Sequence record: PP496441.1
Length of the DNA: 64,000 bases
Reading direction: 5' to 3' (one strand)
Shown here one piece after another: positions 757 through 13,268 of this stretch. Positions within the stretch are counted from its first letter, which is position 1; the number at the start of each line of letters is the position of its first letter. Made by a program: the position numbers and the translations under genes. The notes beneath the pieces are model-generated. The model made no database searches. It had not been told where the DNA came from and saw only the letters and a list, made by a program, of their open reading frames with translations.

Positions 757-3138
757 ATGGCAGCCAAACCACCTGACAAGATCTCACGACGTAAGCTACA
801 GGAACTTCTGGATCGGAAGGAGGATCAACTCAAGTCTGATCACCGCTCCAAGAAGATCATCACCAAGCTCACGTCGTTCGAGAAGGCGAAAGCCGAAGCC
901 AGAGACATCACTAAGCCCTATCACAAGGAAGTGACTCTGGACGACATCATGGACCTTCGCGGAATGCTGGGCGGCAATCGCGCCATGGCCCCGTTGGAAG
1001 GTCAGTTCCTGATGACACCGGAGGAAGAACAGATCTCGGAACTGGGACTGTCGGAAACGCTGGATGAGATTTTCTCCAGTGGTATCGGCTTGCCTCCCGA
1101 CCTGAAGATCGATGACCGGGATCTGAAAGCGCTGCCCAACGTATTCGAGTGGACTACTTCGAAGATGGGCGCTAAGATGAAGCCGTACGCCCGGCAATAT
1201 GAGGTGATGATCAAGTCCTGCTCTGAGTGGTGCCCACCGTGCACTAAGAAGCGCTGGCCGAAACACAAGATGGGTTTCGCGAAATCGTTTCACTACTCGC
1301 CCGCTCTCCCCGTGGATTTTGACGTAGCCAACATTGATGACTACGTTCAGCACTTGGAGAACGGGCGTTGTCCGTGTTGCAAGAAAAGAAAATCGGAGTT
1401 GGTGCGCAGCGGGCAGTTGCCTCTGGTTACCGAACTGGACATGTGTCTGGGTCAGCGGGCGGGTAAGTCTGCAACGATCTATTCCCTGATCCCCTACCTC
1501 ATTCACCGCTGGCTCAAGGTTCCTTCGCCGGTACAGGCGCTGGGACTGCTGGACAACACCCTGCTGTCCGGGGTAGTAGTAGCATTGACCTATGCCAAGG
1601 CCACATCCCTTCTCTGGCAGCCGATCCACAACGCTATCTCGAACACCGGCTGGTTCAAAGAGTACAACGCGCTGTTGAACCACTACCAAGAGTTCTACGG
1701 CGAGGAATTCTTCAAGCTGAAAGACTCGTTCGTGCAGTACGGCCACCGGAATATGATCTTCAGCCCCTCCGGCCCGAACAAGCGTACACTCCGGGGTGAG
1801 ACCCGTATCTGGACCGGCACGGACGAAATCGGTTTCTTCTACCATGGCGACGACGGCGACGACAAGGAACGTGCATCGGCCAACGAGGTATACGTATCGC
1901 TGGGTAACTCCCTGTTCACGGTTAAGAAGGCAGCGGAAACTGCCTTACTGTCCGGCATGGACGGTATCCCTATGACCCTGATGGCGAACATCTCCTCGCC
2001 ATCTAGCTACAAAGACAAGATCATGTCGCTGATCCGTGAGTTCGAGAACGAGCCCACCGTCGTGACCATGCACTTGCCTACCTGGGAGTTCAACCCCAAG
2101 ACCAGTAAGGGTGACTTCAAGAAGGAATATGCGGCTGATCCTGTCAAGGCAGACCGTGACTTCGGGGCTAACCCTCCAATGTCCGAGAACCCCTACCTTC
2201 CTGACCTCGAACCCATGAAGCGTCAGGTGCTCAAGTCCCAGCGCAACATGGTAGAGTACGAATATAAGCTGATCAAGGCTACCAACGGTGCACCACAGCG
2301 CTATGCCAAGATCAAGCGACTCCGTGAGTTCATGGACAAGGTGCCGAAGCACGTGATGACCATCGACGCCGGGCACAGCAACAACTCCTTCGCCTTGACC
2401 GTTGGTTATCCAGAGATGTACCGAGGGAAGCTTCGTCTGGTGTGCACGGGTGTGGTGGAAGTGGCACCGACACATGGCCAGAACACTATAAACTTCACCA
2501 AGATCGCCAAGGAAATGATCTACCCGCTGATCGAGCACTTCAACGTTGGTCTGGTGGTGACTGACCGCTGGAACTCTTTGAAGCTGCTGCATGACATCGA
2601 AGACGAGTACGGTATCTTCACGTTGCAGTACAGTCTGCGACCAGATGACTTCAACTTTATCTACGACTACTACATGGATGAAGACTTCGCCTATGCCCGT
2701 ATTCCGGTGCCTGAGATTCCCATTGATCAGATCATGGACGTCGATATCGATGAGTACCCGAAGTGCTTCGGTCCCGGCAACAAGACCACGGGCAGGCCAA
2801 TGCCTGTAGCGCACATGATCCATCAGTCGCAAACGGTTCAGGTGAATAGCCGGGGCAGTGTGGACAAAGGCTTGGGTCTGACCGATGACATATTCCGTGC
2901 GTTCAACTTGCTCACCTATGTCTGCGTGGATGAGGAATACGTGGAAGAGTACATGCTGCTAACGGGTTCGGTCGCCGGTGAGAAGCGTGCCATTGGCGCC
3001 ATGGCAAGAGGTGGCATAACTCCGGGTAGTCGGGGCAGTGGTGGCAAGGCCATGACTACCTCCGTCGGTGCGGTCGCGGGGGCGAGCACAGCCTCCGGCA
3101 GCGGCGGGAACGGTGTATTCAGCCGTACGTCCCGCTAA
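757..3138 (+). CDS. terL: terminase large subunit
   Basis: Walker A GQRAGKS, Walker B TGTDEIG, RNase H-like nuclease motif TIDAG; followed by a portal-like gene. Confidence 0.88.
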   Translation: MAAKPPDKISRRKLQELLDRKEDQLKSDHRSKKIITKLTSFEKAKAEARDITKPYHKEVTLDDIMDLRGMLGGNRAMAPLEGQFLMTPEEEQISELGLSETLDEIFSSGIGLPPDLKIDDRDLKALPNVFEWTTSKMGAKMKPYARQYEVMIKSCSEWCPPCTKKRWPKHKMGFAKSFHYSPALPVDFDVANIDDYVQHLENGRCPCCKKRKSELVRSGQLPLVTELDMCLGQRAGKSATIYSLIPYLIHRWLKVPSPVQALGLLDNTLLSGVVVALTYAKATSLLWQPIHNAISNTGWFKEYNALLNHYQEFYGEEFFKLKDSFVQYGHRNMIFSPSGPNKRTLRGETRIWTGTDEIGFFYHGDDGDDKERASANEVYVSLGNSLFTVKKAAETALLSGMDGIPMTLMANISSPSSYKDKIMSLIREFENEPTVVTMHLPTWEFNPKTSKGDFKKEYAADPVKADRDFGANPPMSENPYLPDLEPMKRQVLKSQRNMVEYEYKLIKATNGAPQRYAKIKRLREFMDKVPKHVMTIDAGHSNNSFALTVGYPEMYRGKLRLVCTGVVEVAPTHGQNTINFTKIAKEMIYPLIEHFNVGLVVTDRWNSLKLLHDIEDEYGIFTLQYSLRPDDFNFIYDYYMDEDFAYARIPVPEIPIDQIMDVDIDEYPKCFGPGNKTTGRPMPVAHMIHQSQTVQVNSRGSVDKGLGLTDDIFRAFNLLTYVCVDEEYVEEYMLLTGSVAGEKRAIGAMARGGITPGSRGSGGKAMTTSVGAVAGASTASGSGGNGVFSRTSR

Positions 3139-3420: not shown

Positions 3421-5235
3421 ATGATCCGAATGAACAACCGCATGCGGTTATCAGACAAGAATGGTCGCATGACGACCATCGCGTCACCGCAGAGCATGAG
3501 TGGCAGCATGGGTGCAGGGGGTCACCCCATGACTCGCGCCATGGGTGGCAACGCGTCCACCCGAGACAGCCTGCTCGACGGCATCCTGAAGCTCGACCCG
3601 GATGTCATGCGTCAGATCTACATGGATATGTACCTGTTCGATCCGACCATCGGCGGTGCCACTGACTTGCTGGCCCAGAGCCCGTGGTCGGACTACGATC
3701 TAGTAGACGCTGAGCCGGATCAACTGGACATCTTCTACCGGTCGATGGAACTGCTGAACTACCGAGAGCTGATGCCGGAGTTCACCATCGACTACCTGAC
3801 GCTGGGCGCTGCCGTAGGTACTCCGCTGTACAGCGTGTCGGAAAAGGCATTCACCGACATCATTCCGCACTCCATCGCCAGTATTCAGGTTCAGGAAGTT
3901 CCACTGTATTCCCAAGACCCTGTGCTGACGCTGCTGGTGCCGGAAGAGATGCGCACGTTCGCGACCAGTCAAGACCCTTATGTGGTTAAGATGCGGCAGC
4001 GCATGACACCGAAGATGGTGGAAGCATTCCGAGCGCAGGAGGTTGCACTTGATCCGGTGACCACGCTGTACGTACCCCGCACTTCGTTCTCGACAGTGCA
4101 GCAAGGCGTATCGCTGTACACCCGCTTGATCCCGATCTACTTGCTCGAACGTCTGCTGTACCGTGGCACGTTGACCGAGGCTACTCGCCGCCAGCGCTCG
4201 ACGTTGCACATTCAAGCCGGTGACGATCTGTGGAACCCGGACGACAACGAGCTGAACAGTCTGGTGCAGCTGTTCCTGCAAGCCGAGCAAGATCCAGTGT
4301 CGGCCATCGTCGCTACCCAGATGAACGTGCAGACTCAGGAGATTCGAGCTGCCGGTGACTTCTGGAAGTGGACGGATAACCTGGAGCAGTTCAACGACAT
4401 CAAGCTGCGAGGCATGGGGATCAACGAATCCTACATGTCAGGTGATGTGACCTACGACAACCTGAGTACCAGTGTTACCATGTTCCAAGAGCAGCAGGAC
4501 TCGCTCCGGGAAATGATGGTACGTAAGACTCTATATACCAAGGTGTTCCCGGTCCTGTCGATCACCCACGACTTCCGCCGCAAGGAAGAGTCGAGTCATG
4601 CTCGCCGCGAGATGGCTACGGCCAAGGCTGCACAGAAGCGTACCCTGAACGATTCGTTCGCGTTCCAGGTGAACGACAAATCGTCGCTGGTCATCCCCAA
4701 AGTGGTGTGGCACAAGAAGCTACGTTCCATGTACACCGAAGGTTCGTTCGACATCCTTGAGAAGCTGTCGGAAGCTGGTCTGCCGGTTACACTCCGGGCA
4801 TGGGCCGCTGCCGGGGGTTACGACCTGGATAGCGCCATGCAGGCAATGGCCGACGACGCCAAGCTGCGTAAAGAAGTGTCGGACTTCAAAGCCAAGAATG
4901 GTATTGACGCCGGTACGGAAAACGACTTCAACCTCGATGGTGATACCGAGCTGTCGATGGTCAGGTCCGCGTCCGCGTTGCTGGACAAGGCAATGGGTGG
5001 CCGGGGTATGAAGCCACTGGGTCTGCTGGGTCGTGAGTTCAGTGAGGCGGATTCCGAAGTGGTGCGCCATGACCATTCCGGCAAGCGCGTCTGGGTAGTT
5101 GACCAGCACCGAGCCAAGCGGGAAGAGAACGACAAAGCGATGAAGGCTTTGAAGCAAGCTTCCGATCCAAACTTCCGTGCCAAGACGGTAGCCGCCGTTA
5201 ACCGTAGACAAGGCGCGAGAAAGACTCGCGGCTGA
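3421..5235 (+). CDS. portal protein (putative)
   Basis: 604 aa after terL, helical N-terminus (MYLFDPTIGGATDLL) and portal-like layout; canonical terL-portal-protease order. Confidence 0.75.
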   Translation: MIRMNNRMRLSDKNGRMTTIASPQSMSGSMGAGGHPMTRAMGGNASTRDSLLDGILKLDPDVMRQIYMDMYLFDPTIGGATDLLAQSPWSDYDLVDAEPDQLDIFYRSMELLNYRELMPEFTIDYLTLGAAVGTPLYSVSEKAFTDIIPHSIASIQVQEVPLYSQDPVLTLLVPEEMRTFATSQDPYVVKMRQRMTPKMVEAFRAQEVALDPVTTLYVPRTSFSTVQQGVSLYTRLIPIYLLERLLYRGTLTEATRRQRSTLHIQAGDDLWNPDDNELNSLVQLFLQAEQDPVSAIVATQMNVQTQEIRAAGDFWKWTDNLEQFNDIKLRGMGINESYMSGDVTYDNLSTSVTMFQEQQDSLREMMVRKTLYTKVFPVLSITHDFRRKEESSHARREMATAKAAQKRTLNDSFAFQVNDKSSLVIPKVVWHKKLRSMYTEGSFDILEKLSEAGLPVTLRAWAAAGGYDLDSAMQAMADDAKLRKEVSDFKAKNGIDAGTENDFNLDGDTELSMVRSASALLDKAMGGRGMKPLGLLGREFSEADSEVVRHDHSGKRVWVVDQHRAKREENDKAMKALKQASDPNFRAKTVAAVNRRQGARKTRG

Positions 5236-5259: not shown

Positions 5260-7452
5260 ATGAAACACAATCCACAAGTCACGCGCCTTTCCGCCTTGGC
5301 TGCTGCCGGTATCAACGTCAAGTCAGGCTCGCCGGTCGATGTTGTGCACCAGCACACTCGCACTCTGGGCAACAACATCGACAAGTTGAGCACGCCTCGT
5401 CAGTGGGCCATTGCTCATCTGATGAACGAAGCGGCCGACCTGCTGGTTGTAGAAACTGGCAGCCTTCAAGACGACTACATCGACTACTTCAAAGGTGCAC
5501 TGGAGAAGTTCGGTGTGTCCTCCCCGGCGGAATTGACCCAAGAGAAGGCTTCCGAGTTCTTCAACTGGATCAGCGACAACTGGAAGAAAGGTGAAGGCCC
5601 GAAAGAAACGGCAGGCGCCTTCAACTCCGACAAGTCTCGTCGTATCCTTCGTGATCAGCTTACGGCGGTATTGAGTCTCCCCGGCTCGAAACGTAAGTCT
5701 TTTGTGGCGCAAGTACTAAAGACGGCCAAAGCTGAAGGCACTACTATCCCCGAGCCTCAGATGTATGATGATCGCGGGCTCACTGCGTGGATGAACTCGA
5801 AAGTAACTGATCTTCAGCTCACTCAAGATGTACTCACCGACATGGGTGTACTGAAGTGGGCAGAAGAGTCGGAAGCCAGTGTCGAAACTGCCGCCCCTAC
5901 TGAGCTGCGCAAGGCGTTGGACAAACTCCTGCCAGTACTCAAGAAAGCATGGCCCGCTGGCGTGGACATGGATGAGATGGAAGGCTATATCGCGCTGTCC
6001 GAACTGGATGGGGATAGCCCTGATGAAGCTGGCGCCGACGCTTTCAGCAAGCTCAAGGGTGTGTCTAAGTGGAAGAAGATGAAGGGCAGTGGTCACTCTT
6101 ATGATCGCTGGTCGTTCACTCTGGCCGGTGTTGATGCCGAAGTCGAGTTCGACGAAGACGGTATCGGTTACGTCTGGTTGCCAGCGTCGTTCTATCCGGA
6201 GCAGGCCAGCGTAGAAACTGCCCGCACCCAGATGGATATCTTGGCCACCCGTGTGAGCGACGCCAAGTACGCTCTGTCCATCGCCAAAACGCCGGAAGCC
6301 AAGGCTAAGGCTAAAGACCGACTGACCAAGGCTAAAGCTGCCCAGTTGGCTTTCCGTAGAAAGAGCAAGGCTACGGCGGAAGTCGAAACCGCCAGTCAGT
6401 TCTCCTTCGTCAAAGTCACCCAGAACGGTAACACGTATCGTCTGGAAGCGTCGGACACCGGTAACTTCAAATCCGTCATGATCTGGAAAGGCGGCATGTG
6501 GACGAAGCCAGGTCCGGACGAAGCGTTCAAGGATAAAGAGCCACACCGCATGCTGGGTGCCCTGCGCACGCCCAACGGTGCAGAACTGGCTACCCTCAAC
6601 CTGCCGGAAACCCCAGTGGCAAGCATGGAAGAGATGGCCGAGCTGTTCGGCGCCATGGGTATCGAAGAGAGCGAGATCCGTCGCTTCTACGGCGGTGGCC
6701 CAGAGTGGAATGATCGCAGCGTCTACGATGGCAACATCCCGAGCGTATCCCCCGCTAATCTGGGTGTGAACCCAACTTATGCCTACACCGACATGCACCC
6801 GCTGCGTGCCTATGAGGCGGAAGACACCATCCGTATCAACGGCCTTGACGCCACGTTGCAATCCATCGACAACGGGCAGGCTGTGTTCACAGTTGACGGC
6901 GTAGATACCACCACGGTGCCGCTGGACAACATCGTGGTCGCTGAAGGTGAAGCCTCGGTAGTAGCCACTGCCATGGTATCTCATCGCGTACTGGTCACTG
7001 CTGGTCACGAAGACCTGACTCAGTACAAGTCGCTGCGTCACGACTTCGAGGCTGTTACTGCGAACCACCAAGAGCTGTCACAAGTCAAGGTAGGCCCGGC
7101 GCTGCAAACCCTCGCCAAGGCGGGTAACCGTCGCGCTCTGGTACTGGCCCACGCCGGTGTGCAGCGTATCAACGAAGGTCATGCACTGCTCAAAGCCTCC
7201 ATCGGCTATGGCAAGGAAGCGGCGACCGCCAGTGTCATCACAGAGCTGGCTGATCTGAACAACCTGTGTGGCAAGGATCAAGTATCGCCGCAAGACGTTA
7301 TCGACTCCGCGCCGGTGGTCACCCATCTGAAACAGGGGGAGTTCAAGGCAGACATGCCGGACGTGGTTGACTCTTCGGACTTCGAGCTGAACGACCCGCA
7401 AGCCGAACAGGCGTCCACGCGCAAGAGCCGCTTCCCAAGCCGCAAGCGCTAA
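5260..7452 (+). CDS. mosaic head-associated protein (putative polyprotein with xETA linkers)
   Basis: 730 aa between portal and protease; repeated KETA/SVETA/EVETA/VVATA/AATA motifs; one module shared with 11250..13268. Confidence 0.7.
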   Translation: MKHNPQVTRLSALAAAGINVKSGSPVDVVHQHTRTLGNNIDKLSTPRQWAIAHLMNEAADLLVVETGSLQDDYIDYFKGALEKFGVSSPAELTQEKASEFFNWISDNWKKGEGPKETAGAFNSDKSRRILRDQLTAVLSLPGSKRKSFVAQVLKTAKAEGTTIPEPQMYDDRGLTAWMNSKVTDLQLTQDVLTDMGVLKWAEESEASVETAAPTELRKALDKLLPVLKKAWPAGVDMDEMEGYIALSELDGDSPDEAGADAFSKLKGVSKWKKMKGSGHSYDRWSFTLAGVDAEVEFDEDGIGYVWLPASFYPEQASVETARTQMDILATRVSDAKYALSIAKTPEAKAKAKDRLTKAKAAQLAFRRKSKATAEVETASQFSFVKVTQNGNTYRLEASDTGNFKSVMIWKGGMWTKPGPDEAFKDKEPHRMLGALRTPNGAELATLNLPETPVASMEEMAELFGAMGIEESEIRRFYGGGPEWNDRSVYDGNIPSVSPANLGVNPTYAYTDMHPLRAYEAEDTIRINGLDATLQSIDNGQAVFTVDGVDTTTVPLDNIVVAEGEASVVATAMVSHRVLVTAGHEDLTQYKSLRHDFEAVTANHQELSQVKVGPALQTLAKAGNRRALVLAHAGVQRINEGHALLKASIGYGKEAATASVITELADLNNLCGKDQVSPQDVIDSAPVVTHLKQGEFKADMPDVVDSSDFELNDPQAEQASTRKSRFPSRKR

Positions 7453-7499: not shown

Positions 7500-8894
7500 A
7501 TGACAATCAAGAGTGCTACATTTGCGGTGGCTGAATCTCAAGCTCAAGGCCTAGCCAACTCCATGGGATGGCCGGGTGAGGTAATGGACAACGGTGACGG
7601 CACTGTCACTCTGTCGCCACCCGACGCATGGGACGATGAAGAGAACCCCGGCAAGGTGGCAGCGTCCAAGCTGACCGGTAACAAGGACTGTCACGTCTTC
7701 GCCAGTATGGCGGTACCCAGTGAAGGTGAGTGGATGGCTGTAGTCATTCAAGGTACCCCAGCGCTGGTACTCATCGACCAAGGATCTGGTGAAGGCTGGT
7801 TGACCCTACAGGCCCCTGCGGACTTCGATGTTCCAGAGAGCGTGTTGATTCCTTTCCAACAACGCCTGACCCAAACGGAAACCGCTTCAATGAAGAAGAC
7901 TATCGTGCTGGCTAACGTCTCCAGCGACCCGGCCACTCCTGATTATCAGGAAGCCTCGATCACTGGTGTTACGCCGGAAGGTCACATCTCAGTAGCGTTC
8001 GCTGACGGTGACATCGGTGTGTACCAAGGTAAGTTCGACCCTGCTGGTCTGATGCCAATCGCGGAAGCGGCAGGCGTCGAAGTTGCCAGCTTCAAACACC
8101 ACACCATGGTTCTGGCCAACGTTGGCACTGCGGCAGCACCTGAATACGCCGAAGCTGAGGTGGTTGGTTCCACCGAGGAAGGCCATTTGGAAGTCGCGTT
8201 CGCTGATGGTGACGTGGGCATCTACCGTTCCTTGTTCCACCCTACCGGTATCTTGCCACTGGGTGTGACTGCCGAGACGGCCAGTGTGCTCATCGAGGTA
8301 GCTGCACGTACGGCGATGAGCCCGGAGCAGAAGCTCAAGCGTGCACAGGACCTGCTCAAGCTGCGCATCCTGCACGACAAGTACGAGACCAACACCGACG
8401 CCCTGAAAGGCAAGAAGGGTCCGGACAATAAAGCCAAGCGCGACAAGAACAACGCTGACAAGGTGAAGCTTCGTGCCAAGCTGGACAAGATGGGTGTCAC
8501 GACGCTGCCGAGCAAAGCTCACCTGCAGCGTACCATCAAGCAGCACAGCGACCTGCCGACCCGTATGCGTGCATCGGACAAGAAGCCAGCCGTCAAGCCT
8601 GGGGCTAAACCCGCTGCTAAGAAGCCAGCGGCTAAGAAAACTATCGTAAGCCTCAATGACGATATCAAGCTTGCCAAGTCACGGTTGAAGTCTGCCAAGT
8701 TAAGGGGGGATGAAAGTACCATCAAGCATGCAGAGGCTCAGATTGAAAAGTGGACCGACGAGCTGAATGATCTGCTCAGGGCCAAAGGGCATGATATCCC
8801 TGTTCGCAAGAAACCAGCTGCAAAGGACGCACCTGCCTCTAACACTCGGGAAGTTAACCGAATGGCCAAAATGATGAAGAAGTACAAAGGCTAA
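7500..8894 (+). CDS. head-associated protein with tandem Tudor/SH3-like repeats and Lys/Ala-rich basic tail
   Basis: Two internal repeats VLANV...P.Y.EA.....EGH..VAFADGD.G.Y; TETA/AETA linkers; ATG at 7500 (track uses TTG at 7494). Confidence 0.7.
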   Translation: MTIKSATFAVAESQAQGLANSMGWPGEVMDNGDGTVTLSPPDAWDDEENPGKVAASKLTGNKDCHVFASMAVPSEGEWMAVVIQGTPALVLIDQGSGEGWLTLQAPADFDVPESVLIPFQQRLTQTETASMKKTIVLANVSSDPATPDYQEASITGVTPEGHISVAFADGDIGVYQGKFDPAGLMPIAEAAGVEVASFKHHTMVLANVGTAAAPEYAEAEVVGSTEEGHLEVAFADGDVGIYRSLFHPTGILPLGVTAETASVLIEVAARTAMSPEQKLKRAQDLLKLRILHDKYETNTDALKGKKGPDNKAKRDKNNADKVKLRAKLDKMGVTTLPSKAHLQRTIKQHSDLPTRMRASDKKPAVKPGAKPAAKKPAAKKTIVSLNDDIKLAKSRLKSAKLRGDESTIKHAEAQIEKWTDELNDLLRAKGHDIPVRKKPAAKDAPASNTREVNRMAKMMKKYKG

Positions 8895-8915
8895 TCCCTC
8901 TGACTGGAGCAAGAC

Positions 8916-9674
8916 ATGAACGTGTTTGAAATGATTGCCCAGCAGAACGCCGCGATGAAACCCATCGACGTGCACAAGCTGGTTAAAGGCAAGGATGTAG
9001 ATCCAAAGCTCAAGGAGATGACCACGGCCAAAGTCGGTATGCCCGGCTTGGCCCAGGCCATTACGTTCGCGGAGTGGTTGCCGTTCGCGGCCAAGACGTA
9101 TCACTGCTCGCCGGATCCGAAGGATTACATTCTGGTCCCGAACATCGTGATGCCGTCGGAGATCCCCAACCGGAATGGCGTGGGCTTCCCCTTGCAGCAA
9201 CTGGTACGATTCAACCCAGAGACTGGTTGCCAAGGCTTCCGTACGGCAGTCGGCAAGGGTACGTACGCGGACCACCAGAACAACACCGTCGCCCCGCTGG
9301 CGAAAGGCGTTATCGTGGATTCGTTCATGCGTCCGCTGGAAGGCTTCAAGGGCGGCGTGTGGAAGTTGCTGTTCCTCTTGGCGTACGACCGGTCCAAAGA
9401 CCAAGCGCTCACCAACGCCATCTTGGCAGGCACTCGTACTAACTACAGCATGGGCGCGTACCTGACCAAGTACACGTGCTCAGTCTGTGGCCGGGACCGG
9501 GGCCAGTGTGTGCACTTGAGCGCGCAGAAAGGTTCGGTGAACTTCCGCAAGGTAGGGAACCAGCTGGCGTACTCGCAGGCATACGAACCTATTTTCTTCG
9601 AGACGTCCTCGGTAGAAGATCCGGCATTCGTATCGTCGATTACTGGCGCTGACCACCTGCTTATCACTCGATAA
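8916..9674 (+). CDS. prohead (maturation) protease, putative
   Basis: PNRNG, ADHQN (His), YSMG (Ser), CSVCG/CxH Zn insert, VEDPA; pattern typical of phage prohead proteases. Confidence 0.75.
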   Translation: MNVFEMIAQQNAAMKPIDVHKLVKGKDVDPKLKEMTTAKVGMPGLAQAITFAEWLPFAAKTYHCSPDPKDYILVPNIVMPSEIPNRNGVGFPLQQLVRFNPETGCQGFRTAVGKGTYADHQNNTVAPLAKGVIVDSFMRPLEGFKGGVWKLLFLLAYDRSKDQALTNAILAGTRTNYSMGAYLTKYTCSVCGRDRGQCVHLSAQKGSVNFRKVGNQLAYSQAYEPIFFETSSVEDPAFVSSITGADHLLITR

Positions 9675-9706
9675 GCAGGAACTCCGTAAGAAGTAGAGGT
9701 AACATC

Positions 9707-9865
9707 ATGGGTATCACTACCATTCTCCTGATCGTGTTGATAGTTCTGCTCGTCTGCGGCTTGCCCGTGTTCCCGTACTCCGCAGGTTGGGGTTACGGCC
9801 CGTCTGGACTGCTCACGGTTATCGTCGTTATCCTGCTTATCCTCGTCTTGACCGGACGACTGTGA
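9707..9865 (+). CDS. DUF3309-like small membrane protein (52 aa, not in ORF track)
   Basis: MGITTILLIVLIVLLVCGLPVFPYSAGWGYGPSGLLTVIVVILLILVLTGRL; GAGGT RBS; WGYGPSG signature. Confidence 0.8.
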   Translation: MGITTILLIVLIVLLVCGLPVFPYSAGWGYGPSGLLTVIVVILLILVLTGRL

Positions 9866-9870
9866 CAACC

Positions 9871-9903
9871 GCCCGCTCTGGCAAACGCTGGGGCGGGCTT
9901 TTT
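9871..9903 (+). terminator. rho-independent terminator
   Basis: GCCCGC...GCGGGC stem followed by TTTTT. Confidence 0.8.
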
Positions 9904-9951
9904 CGTATCTGCTAATTACAAAACATGGATAAATAAATTGGAAGATGGGAC

Positions 9952-11163
9952 ATGATCAAATTCGTGGAGATATCCGCACCTAGTTCGGACTTCGCCAAGA
10001 CCCTCAAGAAAGGCATACGGGTCGTGGTCAACATGGGATCTACTAAGGAACCGTCCTATTGGATGGCTACTGTAGCAAAGAACAATGCAGCGAAGGGCAC
10101 CGTCAACCTGAACTTCGATGATGGAGACGTGGCCGAGTACAAAGCTATCAAGTCCAAGGTGGGTATTGTCGGGATCGGAGTTGCCAAAGTCCGCAAGACT
10201 GAAATCCCATTGTCTCAGGTTGGCAAGTGGCTTACTAGTGAGGAAACTAAATCACCGTCCTCCAACCTGTCTGACCCTGTCCAGAAGTTTTTAGCTAAGT
10301 GGGTAGACTCCTTTGATAAGGACGGGGCCAATCCTTCAAATAAGAAATATTTGTTAAAGACAATGAAGGACTTATTACCTAGCATACCCGAAGAGTATAG
10401 AAAACATACGGGTAGCCTTTTCCGAGGGGTTAGGCTACCCGTAGAAGCTGTAACTTCTATCCTCGCGGGTTCTCGACTAAAATTTAAAGATGAATTCATT
10501 TCGTATTCCTCCGATAGAGATGCTGCTGTAAAATTTGCGGCCTATGTAGACTATGATAAAGGAAAAGAACAAATAGGGATAGTAATAAAAGAGGCTAGTA
10601 ACTCTGTTGCGGTTAATATCTTTGAGGTATGGGATAACATCTCGTCAAAGTACAAAGATATACATTCTCAATCATTTGTAGACGAGGAAAAAGAAGTAGT
10701 ACTTCAAAACTCCAACCTGGGACTAGCTACTTCACAGATTGATATGCTACTTATATCTAAAGGTAAAATAAAATCATTAGGGAAGCAGGAGCCTCCCGGC
10801 TGGAATAAGTTTCTTAAATCAAGTGGAATACTTAAAGACATATATTGCATTCCCAACACTAAAGATAATATTAAGGGTGTACAAGAAGTCCTTAGTTTGA
10901 ACACGACAACTCTTATGAATCCGCAGAAGGTGTCGGCTGTACTAACCAAACTAGGATTTCCTAAATCTAACGGGGAAACATTTAGGACGTTGTACCTTCC
11001 TGACCTAGAGCTTTCTATAAAAGCGTCTATGGTTCCTCAAGGAATACTGTTCGAGACTGGTAAGGGCTGGCGATTTGCCAAGTTTGAGTATAAACAGGTA
11101 GGGATAGCAGAGGATGAAGCATCCGCTATCAATTTATTTAATAGGATAGCCAAACAAAGATAA
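9952..11163 (+). CDS. Tudor-like module fused to R-S-E ADP-ribosyltransferase-like domain
   Basis: LFRGV, FISYSSD and EEKEVVL motifs; core about 35% GC; N- and C-terminal modules paralogous to 11250..13268. Confidence 0.7.
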   Translation: MIKFVEISAPSSDFAKTLKKGIRVVVNMGSTKEPSYWMATVAKNNAAKGTVNLNFDDGDVAEYKAIKSKVGIVGIGVAKVRKTEIPLSQVGKWLTSEETKSPSSNLSDPVQKFLAKWVDSFDKDGANPSNKKYLLKTMKDLLPSIPEEYRKHTGSLFRGVRLPVEAVTSILAGSRLKFKDEFISYSSDRDAAVKFAAYVDYDKGKEQIGIVIKEASNSVAVNIFEVWDNISSKYKDIHSQSFVDEEKEVVLQNSNLGLATSQIDMLLISKGKIKSLGKQEPPGWNKFLKSSGILKDIYCIPNTKDNIKGVQEVLSLNTTTLMNPQKVSAVLTKLGFPKSNGETFRTLYLPDLELSIKASMVPQGILFETGKGWRFAKFEYKQVGIAEDEASAINLFNRIAKQR

Positions 11164-11166
11164 TAG

Positions 11167-11196
11167 TTGCACGGGCTGTTTTGGGTGTGATATAAT
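11167..11196 (+). promoter_or_regulatory. sigma70 extended -10 early promoter
   Basis: TTGCAC-18-TATAAT with TGn; near-duplicate at 48392. Confidence 0.8.
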
Positions 11197-11249
11197 AGCA
11201 CCATGGCACTATTCAAGCGCCGCCCACTGTCCCAATGAGGAAAGCAACC

Positions 11250-13268
11250 ATGACCAGATTGACCCTAGCAACCGTCAACGCCGAGATCGCAAAGTCCGGT
11301 GGCAAAGAAACTCTGGTCAAGGGTAAGGACTACTTCTACTGGATCGGTGGCCGTGCCGATGCCGATCCTCAAATCTGGATTTCCATTTACGTTGCTGCGC
11401 TAAACCAGATGACACTGGCCCAGTGGCTGGAAGACTGGAAGCGCAATGACGACCAATACAACAAACCTACTCCCGACAAGGAAACCCGCAAAATGGCTAT
11501 CAGACACGTTCAGACCCTCGCAGCTCCTGCCAAATCCGGTAAGACGGCATCTGCCAACCCAGCACTGGAAGCAGCCGAAGCTGAACTTAAAAAGGTTCAG
11601 AGCATCATTCAGGGTTTCAAAGCCCGTGGCCTGGTCCCTACTTCCCCGTGGGAAAGGAAACTCAAGGACGCTAAGGCAGCTGTGTCCGCCGCCAAGAAAA
11701 AGAAGACCACTGCTACTGCTGCTCCTGCACAGGAGACCGCTTCCCCGGCTACCGACTTCGCCAAGTCGTTGAAGAAGGGCGTTCGTGTACTGGTCAATCT
11801 CGGCAACACCAAAGAACCGTCCTACTTCCTCGGCGCCATCACCAAGAACAACGCCAGCAAGGGTTCGGTCAACGTGCTGTTTGACGACGGCGACGTTGCA
11901 GAGGTACGTGCGATCAAATCCAAGGTCGGCATCGTGGGCATCGCCATCGACAAGGTACGCAAGTCGGAAGTTCCTGCTGCCCAGATCAGCAAGTGGCTGG
12001 CCGGTGCAACGCCAGCGACCAAGGTACCCGTAGAATTCATTCCGGTACCTACTCCGGTAGCTGAAATCCCCGACGCAGGTCTGGAACAGGTTATTCAAGC
12101 CATACTCAAGCGTAGTGTCTCGGGTGCCCTGTCAGTGGAGAAGACGCATAAAATGGACTTTACCAAAGAGGCCATGCCTAAAGCTATGCGTACTAACTAC
12201 CTGAGCGTAGCGAAAAAAGCAGGGGTGAAGACTGCTACCTTCGATAATAAATCCCAGAAGTGGGTACCAGATGGACTTGCAACGGTTCCGGTTATCCCAA
12301 AAGCAGGTCAGGACATCCGCGGCCCGAAGAAAGGCTTCATTGGTGCTAAAGATGATGCGTCTTTAAAAGTCGCGGTGAATGCGTTGAAAGATGCAGGCTT
12401 CCCAAGCCCAGCTAAAGGTAAGGGCGTTACCTACAAGCAACTGACGCCGCAGCTGGCACTGTGCGCCACCATCCTGCCTGAAGGTATCCTGATCGAGTAC
12501 GGGCTGGGCAAAGTCACTGGCCTGCTGTCCTACACCGAGGTGGGTACGGCTACCACACTAGCCGAGTTGAAGTCGATGATCGCCGACGCCAAAGAGATTC
12601 CGGTGAAGGAACCAAAGAAGCGTAACCCGGCGAACAATGCGCTGGAGAACTTCCTTGAGGATGCAAAAGATTCAAAGAAAGGCGTTAAGGCCAAGCCGTA
12701 CAGCCCGGCAGAAGCCAGAAAGATCATTGGCGCAATCAGCGGCTGGAAGGCGTCCAGCGTGAAGAACAAAGCGTCGGCCACGTTCACCAAAGATTACCCG
12801 AACGGTGTCACTGCTACTGCTTACGTCTTCCCGCAGTACGTGTCGTTTGAATACCCACAAGGTGAGAACGATCACATCAGCGACTTGTCCAAGATCGCAG
12901 CTTACATCAAGCAGATCGACGATGATCAAGCAGTAACACCCGACCAAGGTAAAGCACTGGATGCTCTGGCCAAAGCGTTGAAGGGCTGGCCGAACAAGGT
13001 AATCCAACGGGATGCTGACGAAGACAACTTCCTGCTGCGCGGGTTTGAAGATGATGATCTTCCGGCTGATGTGGAGCCAACTGCTGACGCCATTGAAGCG
13101 CATGCAATCTCAATCTTCAAGAAGATGAAAAGCGTTGACAACTTCAAGAAAAGCAAGATGTACCACGGCGACAACACGTACTCCTTCTCGGCGGCTGGCA
13201 CCGTGGGTTACGTGTACTTCGATGAAGATGGCGTCGGCATGGTCCGTGCAACCCCGTTCCAAGAGTAA
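11250..13268 (+). CDS. chimaeric multi-module protein
   Basis: GAGG RBS supports ATG 11250; contains a Tudor-like module, a module shared with 9952 and a C-terminal module shared with 5260. Confidence 0.75.
   Translation: MTRLTLATVNAEIAKSGGKETLVKGKDYFYWIGGRADADPQIWISIYVAALNQMTLAQWLEDWKRNDDQYNKPTPDKETRKMAIRHVQTLAAPAKSGKTASANPALEAAEAELKKVQSIIQGFKARGLVPTSPWERKLKDAKAAVSAAKKKKTTATAAPAQETASPATDFAKSLKKGVRVLVNLGNTKEPSYFLGAITKNNASKGSVNVLFDDGDVAEVRAIKSKVGIVGIAIDKVRKSEVPAAQISKWLAGATPATKVPVEFIPVPTPVAEIPDAGLEQVIQAILKRSVSGALSVEKTHKMDFTKEAMPKAMRTNYLSVAKKAGVKTATFDNKSQKWVPDGLATVPVIPKAGQDIRGPKKGFIGAKDDASLKVAVNALKDAGFPSPAKGKGVTYKQLTPQLALCATILPEGILIEYGLGKVTGLLSYTEVGTATTLAELKSMIADAKEIPVKEPKKRNPANNALENFLEDAKDSKKGVKAKPYSPAEARKIIGAISGWKASSVKNKASATFTKDYPNGVTATAYVFPQYVSFEYPQGENDHISDLSKIAAYIKQIDDDQAVTPDQGKALDALAKALKGWPNKVIQRDADEDNFLLRGFEDDDLPADVEPTADAIEAHAISIFKKMKSVDNFKKSKMYHGDNTYSFSAAGTVGYVYFDEDGVGMVRATPFQE

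Follow-up and report, generated by a model that had tools for sequence, protein, structure and literature searches.

The window analysed here is a stretch of 64,000 nucleotides, corresponding to nt 1-64000 of Pseudomonas phage vB_PpuM-Pori-4 (PP496441.1), hereafter Pori-4. This phage is a 202.6-kb myophage of P. putida and belongs to CEPEST cluster G3 (bioRxiv 10.1101/2024.03.26.586772). Its genes follow the order terminase, portal (3421-5235), gp5, gp6, the head maturation protease gp7, gp8, gp9 and gp10. We found that a small Tudor-like module occurs twice in gp6, once at the N-terminus of gp9 and once inside gp10. These carriers flank the protease gp7 and all lie downstream of the portal gene. 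Every module carrier in Pori-4 is annotated as a hypothetical protein. The coordinates of the features are collected in Table 1.

A preliminary description of this DNA had claimed that one module is present four times in three genes, and this proved correct. When the window was scanned in six frames the F-x-D-G-D core was found at four places only, which are the four copies. The literal search pattern of the preliminary description, which was offset by one column, matched none of the four copies, and in a six-frame scan of the window a loosened version matched one. Homology of the copies therefore rests on alignments, and these were significant. The gp9 and gp10 copies, which had been called close, are 62% identical over 96 amino acids (E 3e-36). 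Copy b of gp6 aligned with gp9 at E 1e-5, and the four-way alignment of the module contains 12 invariant columns. A hidden Markov model (HMM) was built from metagenomic homologues and gp9. It found exactly these four copies in the window, with domain E-values of 1e-29 for gp9 and of 3e-7 and 0.01 for the two gp6 copies; gp6 as a whole protein scored E 3.7e-12 with this independent HMM. A further copy in gp5, hinted at by a weak BLAST match (E 0.09), was not confirmed by the HMM.

Table 1. Positions of the module copies, candidate protease sites and surrounding genes (window coordinates unless marked as record)
Feature	Position	Strand	Remarks
gp5, 730 aa	5260..7452	+	No module; E-T-A sites at residues 116, 209, 319, 376
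gp6	7500..8894	+	N-terminal half acidic (net -26), containing the two modules; C-terminal half basic (net +28), rich in Lys, Ala and Glu
Candidate prohead-protease site QTE|TAS, Glu codon	7878..7880	+	Before gp6 copy a
gp6 Tudor-like module copy a	7881..8078	+	Short acidic form, pI 4.2
Candidate site GVE|VAS	8079-8081	+	Before gp6 copy b
gp6 Tudor-like module copy b	8082..8273	+	Short acidic form, pI 4.8
Candidate site TAE|TAS	8274-8276	+	After the gp6 copies
gp7 head maturation protease	8916..9674	+	phrog_18299, E 1.7e-61; FFE|TSS 23 residues before the C-terminus
gp9 leader (6 aa ending FVE) and long-form basic module	9952..10257	+	Helix, five strands, C-terminal helix
gp9 passenger, candidate R-S-E ADP-ribosyltransferase	10258..10938	+	LFRGV 10417-10431, SYSS 10501-10512, EEKEVV 10684-10701
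gp10 mosaic	11250..13268	+	N-terminal phrog_9154 domain, then a cleavage-type site, the module, a variable middle part and conserved modules at the C-terminus
Candidate protease site AQE|TAS, Glu codon	11733..11735	+	Before the gp10 module
gp10 long-form basic module	11736..12029	+	Directly after AQE|TAS; invariant in seven G3 orthologues, flanks variable
Major capsid protein	record 139616-140704 (L016:7617-8705:-)	-	K-Q-V-E|T-A-S at residue 67; aligned place in phiRSL1 L-K-A-E|A-A-A

The whole Pori-4 record contains seven module copies in six proteins. The three copies beyond the window lie in gp128 (273 aa, adjoining the baseplate hub gene), gp141 (382 aa, adjoining a NUDIX gene) and gp148 (387 aa, near a head-tail connector gene). 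The module takes two forms. The short form, seen in gp6, is acidic, with an isoelectric point (pI) of 4.2-4.8. The long form continues into a further C-terminal helix, in which the motif R-K-x-E-I-P ... K-W-L is conserved; this form is basic in gp9, gp10 and gp128 (pI 9-10) and has a pI of 5.3 in gp141 and 8.0 in gp148. In gp148 (record 126827-127990; L006:736-1899:-) the module is joined to a long acidic tract of ~130 residues (net charge of the whole protein -53) and to a C-terminal C-x-x-C ... C-x-x-C zinc ribbon.

Given an alignment of 55 sequences, AlphaFold2 modelled gp9 residues 10-98 as one helix, five strands and one helix, with a predicted local distance difference test (pLDDT) score of 88-98. 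A single-sequence AlphaFold run of gp9 gave a mean pLDDT of 36 and was uninformative. The profile search and the fold jobs were run without the rows of gp128, gp141 and gp148. Tudor domains dominated the exhaustive structural search (PHF19, RDM15, SMN, LBR, MTF2, PHF20L1 and TDRD3). The best match was PHF19 (Z 7.3, root-mean-square deviation (rmsd) 2.2 A over 56 residues), with RDM15 (Z 6.7, 2.0 A over 58 residues) and SMN (Z 6.6) also found, and each of these three matches covers the whole target domain. KOW barrels, chromo barrels and the SH3-like translocation-signal domain of TraI ranked lower. We found that the module is a small beta-barrel of the Tudor/SH3-like kind, five-stranded and ~55-60 residues long, which superposes on solved Tudor domains.

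Searches by other routes gave fainter signals. Foldseek with the gp9 model found no match in the PDB at E <= 0.001; the low confidence of two thirds of the model is the probable reason. In a PDB sequence search with the four-copy profile the Tudor matches were non-significant (PHF20, E 0.4), and matches of this profile to NodB deacetylases were spurious, falling on the D-G-D stretch. The Pfam Tudor scores of gp9 (14.6 bits) and gp10 (15.3 bits) were below the cut-off of 28. The homologues are matched by Pfam Tudor_5, BAHCC1 Tudor and Tudor_3, with Tudor_5 in 10 members (best E 8.5e-7) and Tudor_3 at best 3e-6. No match inspected reached a curated Pfam Tudor gathering cut-off, the homologues inspected scoring 16-19 bits against 27-31. 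The structure prediction, the fold search and the sub-threshold Tudor matches in homologues all agree with the label "Tudor/SH3-like" that the module had been given from its sequence. Judged by the model, the copies are an undescribed Tudor-fold domain family with a predicted barrel of ~60 residues, or ~90 with the flanking helices.

Tudor domains that read methyl-lysine or methyl-arginine have an aromatic cage of about four aromatic residues. The alignment of the module shows invariant Asn27, the Tyr after Pro34, Phe55 and an Asp56/Asp57-Gly58 loop, which may map onto the cage positions of SMN and 53BP1. The invariant Asn presumably occupies the position where canonical Tudor cages have an aromatic residue. 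It seems unlikely that the module reads methyl-lysine.

We also considered that the copies could be a chance resemblance or a low-complexity artefact, as might be suspected from the giant repeat proteins that the profile matched through an F-D-D-G-D stretch alone. However, these giant matches are themselves Tudor-like tandem repeats. The pairwise E-values reach 3e-36, the barrel is modelled with high confidence and the independent HMM gives domain E-values from 1e-29 to 0.01. Because of these three lines of evidence we regard chance resemblance as refuted, with a probability close to nil.

The module has a narrow distribution. In the 50,697 records of cultured phages its only carriers were the nine P. 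putida G3 phages and two Vibrio phages of about 200 kb each, GR7B and GR11A. Four proteins of GR7B together contain five copies, and their positions are syntenic, next to the genes for DNA ligase, NudI and the baseplate. No module copy was found in phiRSL1, which of the named relatives is the most similar in protease DNA, so that the virion data published for phiRSL1 do not bear on the module. When 1.84 billion representative proteins were searched with a profile, 110 matches were returned, and the full long-form module was confirmed by HMM in 55 clusters of metagenomic homologues outside the G3 phages. As far as sequence tells, the module family is restricted to a single clade of jumbo myophages with genomes of roughly 200 kb. 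The phage profile also matched proteins P0010-P0021, of up to 7637 aa, which have up to 19 Tudor-like repeats of ~65 residues keeping F-D-D-G-[DE]; these are probably eukaryotic.

The proteins that carry the module share a common plan. The module begins no later than residue 40 in 46 of these 55 clusters, where a short hydrophobic leader precedes it. A C-terminal passenger of >=60 residues follows in 51 clusters, and these passengers fall into 36 groups without BLAST similarity to each other. Those that exceed Pfam cut-offs are ADPrib_exo_Tox (70.7 bits), SprT-like (41.7 and 29.2) and BRCT (29.9). In Pori-4 the module is preceded by a very short leader in gp9 and gp141, and by a longer N-terminal segment ending in xxE|T-A/S in gp6, gp10 and gp128. 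Comparison of gp10 among G3 phages shows no variation in the module or in its AQE|TAS junction, while the segments on either side are exchanged between phages. This is the architecture of a constant handle with variable effectors, as in polymorphic systems. The module had been described as interchangeable and as carrying different passengers into the head. Interchangeability and diversity of passengers are strongly supported by the 36 unrelated groups among 51 passengers; a head location is supported indirectly, by gene position and by a motif common to the capsid and the protease tail that is described below.

The passenger of gp9 is a candidate ADP-ribosyltransferase (ART). It contains LFRGV at residue 156, SYSS at 184 and EEKEVV at 245, in the Arg/Ser-x-Ser/Glu-x-Glu order of such enzymes. 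Across gp9 and eleven metagenomic relatives Arg158 (L-F-R-G-V), Ser184 (S-Y-S-S or S-W-T-T) and Ala192 are invariant, followed by E-K-E. In an hhalign comparison with four true ARTs the Arg motif and the Ser motif fell in register, though the match was weak (E 0.0022, probability 13%). A language-model search with gp9 residues 103-300 returned DRAT, ADPrib_exo_Tox and Mod_ADP_RT clusters at 0.89-0.90, which we treat as a lead only. We found no significant match to an ART family or fold in Pfam, PDB sequence or PDB profile searches, and the model of the passenger is poor (pLDDT <50). On balance this passenger probably has an ART fold, a view we hold with some reserve.

The gene for gp9 looks like a self-contained accessory cassette. 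It is present in 4 of 9 G3 phages, and its region has a G+C content of 47% against ~55% elsewhere. The cassette spans 9871-11163, with a strong terminator of 12-bp stem upstream (9871-9898) and the hexamer CTAATT at 9912. Another shared module links gp9 (10939-11109) with gp10 (12381-12551) at 38% identity (E 4e-5). The gp10 copy lies within an insertion of ~120 residues that is unique to Pori-4 among seven G3 orthologues. This Pori-4-only insertion suggests that a recent exchange may have taken place between gp9 and gp10.

The copies in gp6 and gp10 start directly after an ETA- or EVA-type linker, as had been noticed earlier, the junctions being QTE|TAS, GVE|VAS and AQE|TAS. The six-residue gp9 leader, which ends in Glu, aligns with the AQE|TAS site of gp10. 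We found ten occurrences of E-T-[AS]-[ASM] over all six frames of the genome. Eight of them fall in six proteins that account for 4.3% of the proteome: gp5 (2), gp6 (2), gp7 in its C-terminal tail, gp10, gp128 and, at residue 67, the major capsid protein. The binomial probability of such a distribution is 4.7e-10. The other two matches both lie in gp106 (record 83750-84328), which adjoins a peptidase-annotated gene, and read K-E|T-A-A and S-E|T-S-A.

Residue 67 of the major capsid protein, which is about where T4 gp23 is cut, is likely a propeptide junction. In giant phage SPN3US the protease cuts after A-x-E; its substrates lose N-terminal propeptides of 20-254 residues, and the protease shortens itself at the C-terminus (PMC10052503). 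Because of this precedent and of the presence of the motif in the capsid protein and the protease tail, we read xxE|T-A/S as the site of gp7. From these sequence patterns we infer that gp5, gp6, gp10 and gp128 would be prohead-internal substrates of gp7. The presumed propeptides hold small conserved phage domains, phrog_9154 in gp10 (11250-11460, E 1e-15) and phrog_28651 in gp5 (5458-5589, E 8e-9).

We propose that the module is a constant handle on head-internal cargo that is trimmed in the prohead and delivered with the DNA, and we give this proposal an even chance of being right. The carriers would be built into the prohead core beside gp6, which is presumably scaffold-like and itself has two acidic copies. 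The gp7 protease would then trim them just upstream of the module. Once trimmed, the carriers would remain in the filled head, now beginning with the module, and would be ejected together with the DNA as effectors, the ART-like gp9 being one example. Phage ARTs are often packaged in the head (PMC9503650). For the carriers of the module we infer cleavage, presence in the virion, ejection and incorporation or retention through the module. Since cleavage-type sites bracket the acidic copies of gp6, the arrangement suggests an assembly role for these copies at least.

Several points weigh against this proposal. We found no virion proteomics for phages with the module. The Z scores of the fold search are all <8, middling by the tool's own scale, and show the fold class and not a specific family. 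In T4 and SPN3US it is the removed propeptide that is thought to target the protein (PMC10052503, PMC3012670), whereas the module here would be retained. A metagenomic phage contig (L013; 5265-11216) carries five ADPrib_exo_Tox genes in tandem, with a primase-like gene as the sole interruption. These five ART paralogues have one common short leader and only one of them has the module; the leaders are similar and continue into a D-W-W-E ... E-E-Q ... Y-L-K motif. In Pori-4, the neighbours of gp141 and gp148 are replication-type genes (NUDIX, ligases), and neither protein has an E-T-A site. Finally, gp9, gp128 and gp141 have a promoter-like motif in common with ribonucleotide reductase (RNR) and helicase genes, which does not point to late expression.

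The proposal is weakest where it takes the module itself for the address. Since the five ARTs of this contig keep the same leader with or without the module, the leader could be the address. On such a reading a short leader or a removed propeptide targets the protein, and the retained module acts later, as a tether to packaged DNA, at the tail exit or on a host target. The targeting propeptides of T4 and SPN3US provide a precedent for this. Modules of the cargo type are basic (pI 9-10), with Lys-rich linkers behind them, and the structural neighbours of the module include small barrels that bind DNA (Shuguo PWWP with single-stranded DNA, MTF2 with DNA). However, the copies in gp6 are acidic and have cleavage-type sites on both sides, which fits an assembly role better than DNA binding. 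We consider this explanation possible but rather unlikely.

The location of gp141 and gp148 beside NUDIX, DNA ligase and RNA ligase genes raises the alternative that the module serves cytoplasmic phage proteins as a general domain for interactions or for binding nucleic acids. The majority of carriers would then be non-virion proteins and E-T-A would be just a feature of the linker. The BRCT and SprT-like passengers, which are domains of DNA metabolism, and the promoter-like motif in common with the RNR and helicase genes are consistent with this. However, the same E-T-A motif is found at the likely capsid propeptide junction and at the C-terminus of the protease, three carriers lie in the portal-protease block, and the N-terminal position after a leader is strongly conserved. 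A cytoplasmic role for most carriers is improbable in our view.

A more specific version of the handle proposal is that the module is the universal cargo-loading tag of the clade. Its degenerate, Asp-rich cage would grip the Lys-rich tails of gp6 and of fellow cargo, so that any protein fused behind the module would be drawn into the prohead core, kept after proteolysis and injected into the host. We put this forward tentatively, as a speculation with less than an even chance. If it were true, the module would be the equivalent, in the form of a folded domain, of the capsid targeting sequence (CTS) of T4, and could be reused to load foreign proteins into capsids.

The T4 CTS is a peptide of about 10 residues that is cut off. 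In contrast, the shared element in Pori-4 has 60-90 residues, forms a folded domain and would be kept by the mature protein, and there is a separate short leader as well. The internal proteins of T4 are diverse and fast-evolving and have only a conserved N-terminal element in common; the T4 prohead protease cuts after Glu and the proteins are injected with the DNA (PMC3012670, PMC5512222). The likeness to the T4 CTS and Alt lies in the conserved N-terminal element on diverse proteins and, as presumed here, in the processing at Glu sites and the packaging of one of several ART paralogues.

MuF-effector fusions and polyvalent proteins likewise have a constant head-associated N-terminal domain with many alternative C-terminal effectors, including ARTs (PMC9503650, PMC5512222). 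However, the module is a barrel of the Tudor fold and occurs only in a single clade of jumbo phages, and the words Tudor and SH3 are absent from both papers. We found no Phage_Mu_F domain in gp5, gp6, gp9 or gp10 (Pfam, E up to 1), and it is not one of the 22 families that were listed for the homologues (55 sequences). The phiKZ/SPN3US-like giant phages, whose paralogous head proteins lose N-terminal propeptides (20-254 aa) at x-x-E and whose protease trims its own C-terminus (PMC10052503), would be similar in this maturation of head proteins. Pori-4 differs in belonging to another lineage, in the flavour of the motif (Thr at P1', Ala or Ser at P2') and in shuffling a small domain among unrelated proteins instead of whole-protein paralogy. 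With the eukaryotic Tudor/royal family (PHF19, SMN, 53BP1/Crb2 type) the module has in common the five-stranded barrel (rmsd ~2 A over 51-58 residues) and F-D-D-G on strand 3. It differs in the invariant Asn, the Asp-rich loop and the extra N- and C-terminal helices, and the Pfam matches inspected are sub-threshold.

Overall, the module is a new clade-specific Tudor-fold family, among few clear Tudor-fold families in phages, in a known type of architecture, that of a shared N-terminal handle with polymorphic effectors. A role in head delivery is plausible. How phages choose the proteins that are loaded into the head and injected is understood in few systems, namely the T4 CTS, MuF fusions and giant-phage propeptides. 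If the proposed handle is real, it would be a new and easily testable means of loading or retention, standing before at least 36 unrelated passengers that include ART and metallopeptidase effectors. It would also be a marker for injected effectors in uncultured jumbo phages.

Other elements recur in the same genes. A second shuffled module is found in gp5 residues 218-305 (5911-6174) and gp10 residues 568-665 (12951-13244), with 40% identity (E 1e-7), and weakly matches the N-terminal region of gp6 (~7569-7922, E 0.05-0.09). Its copies all start with a helix ending in G-W-P or A-W-P. By eye, gp10 residues ~480-545 look like a further copy. A sigma-70-like promoter first suspected by eye before gp10 was not called by a promoter scan. 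The CTAATT hexamer occurs 27 times in the genome, 18 of these intergenic and facing the downstream gene, and in the window it lies at 3135, 3147, 9912 and 20505. It is often followed 6-7 nt on by CATG or CATA. The genes downstream include gp9, gp128, gp141 and those for the RNR large subunit, helicase and resolvase. This pattern makes CTAATT a candidate phage promoter class.

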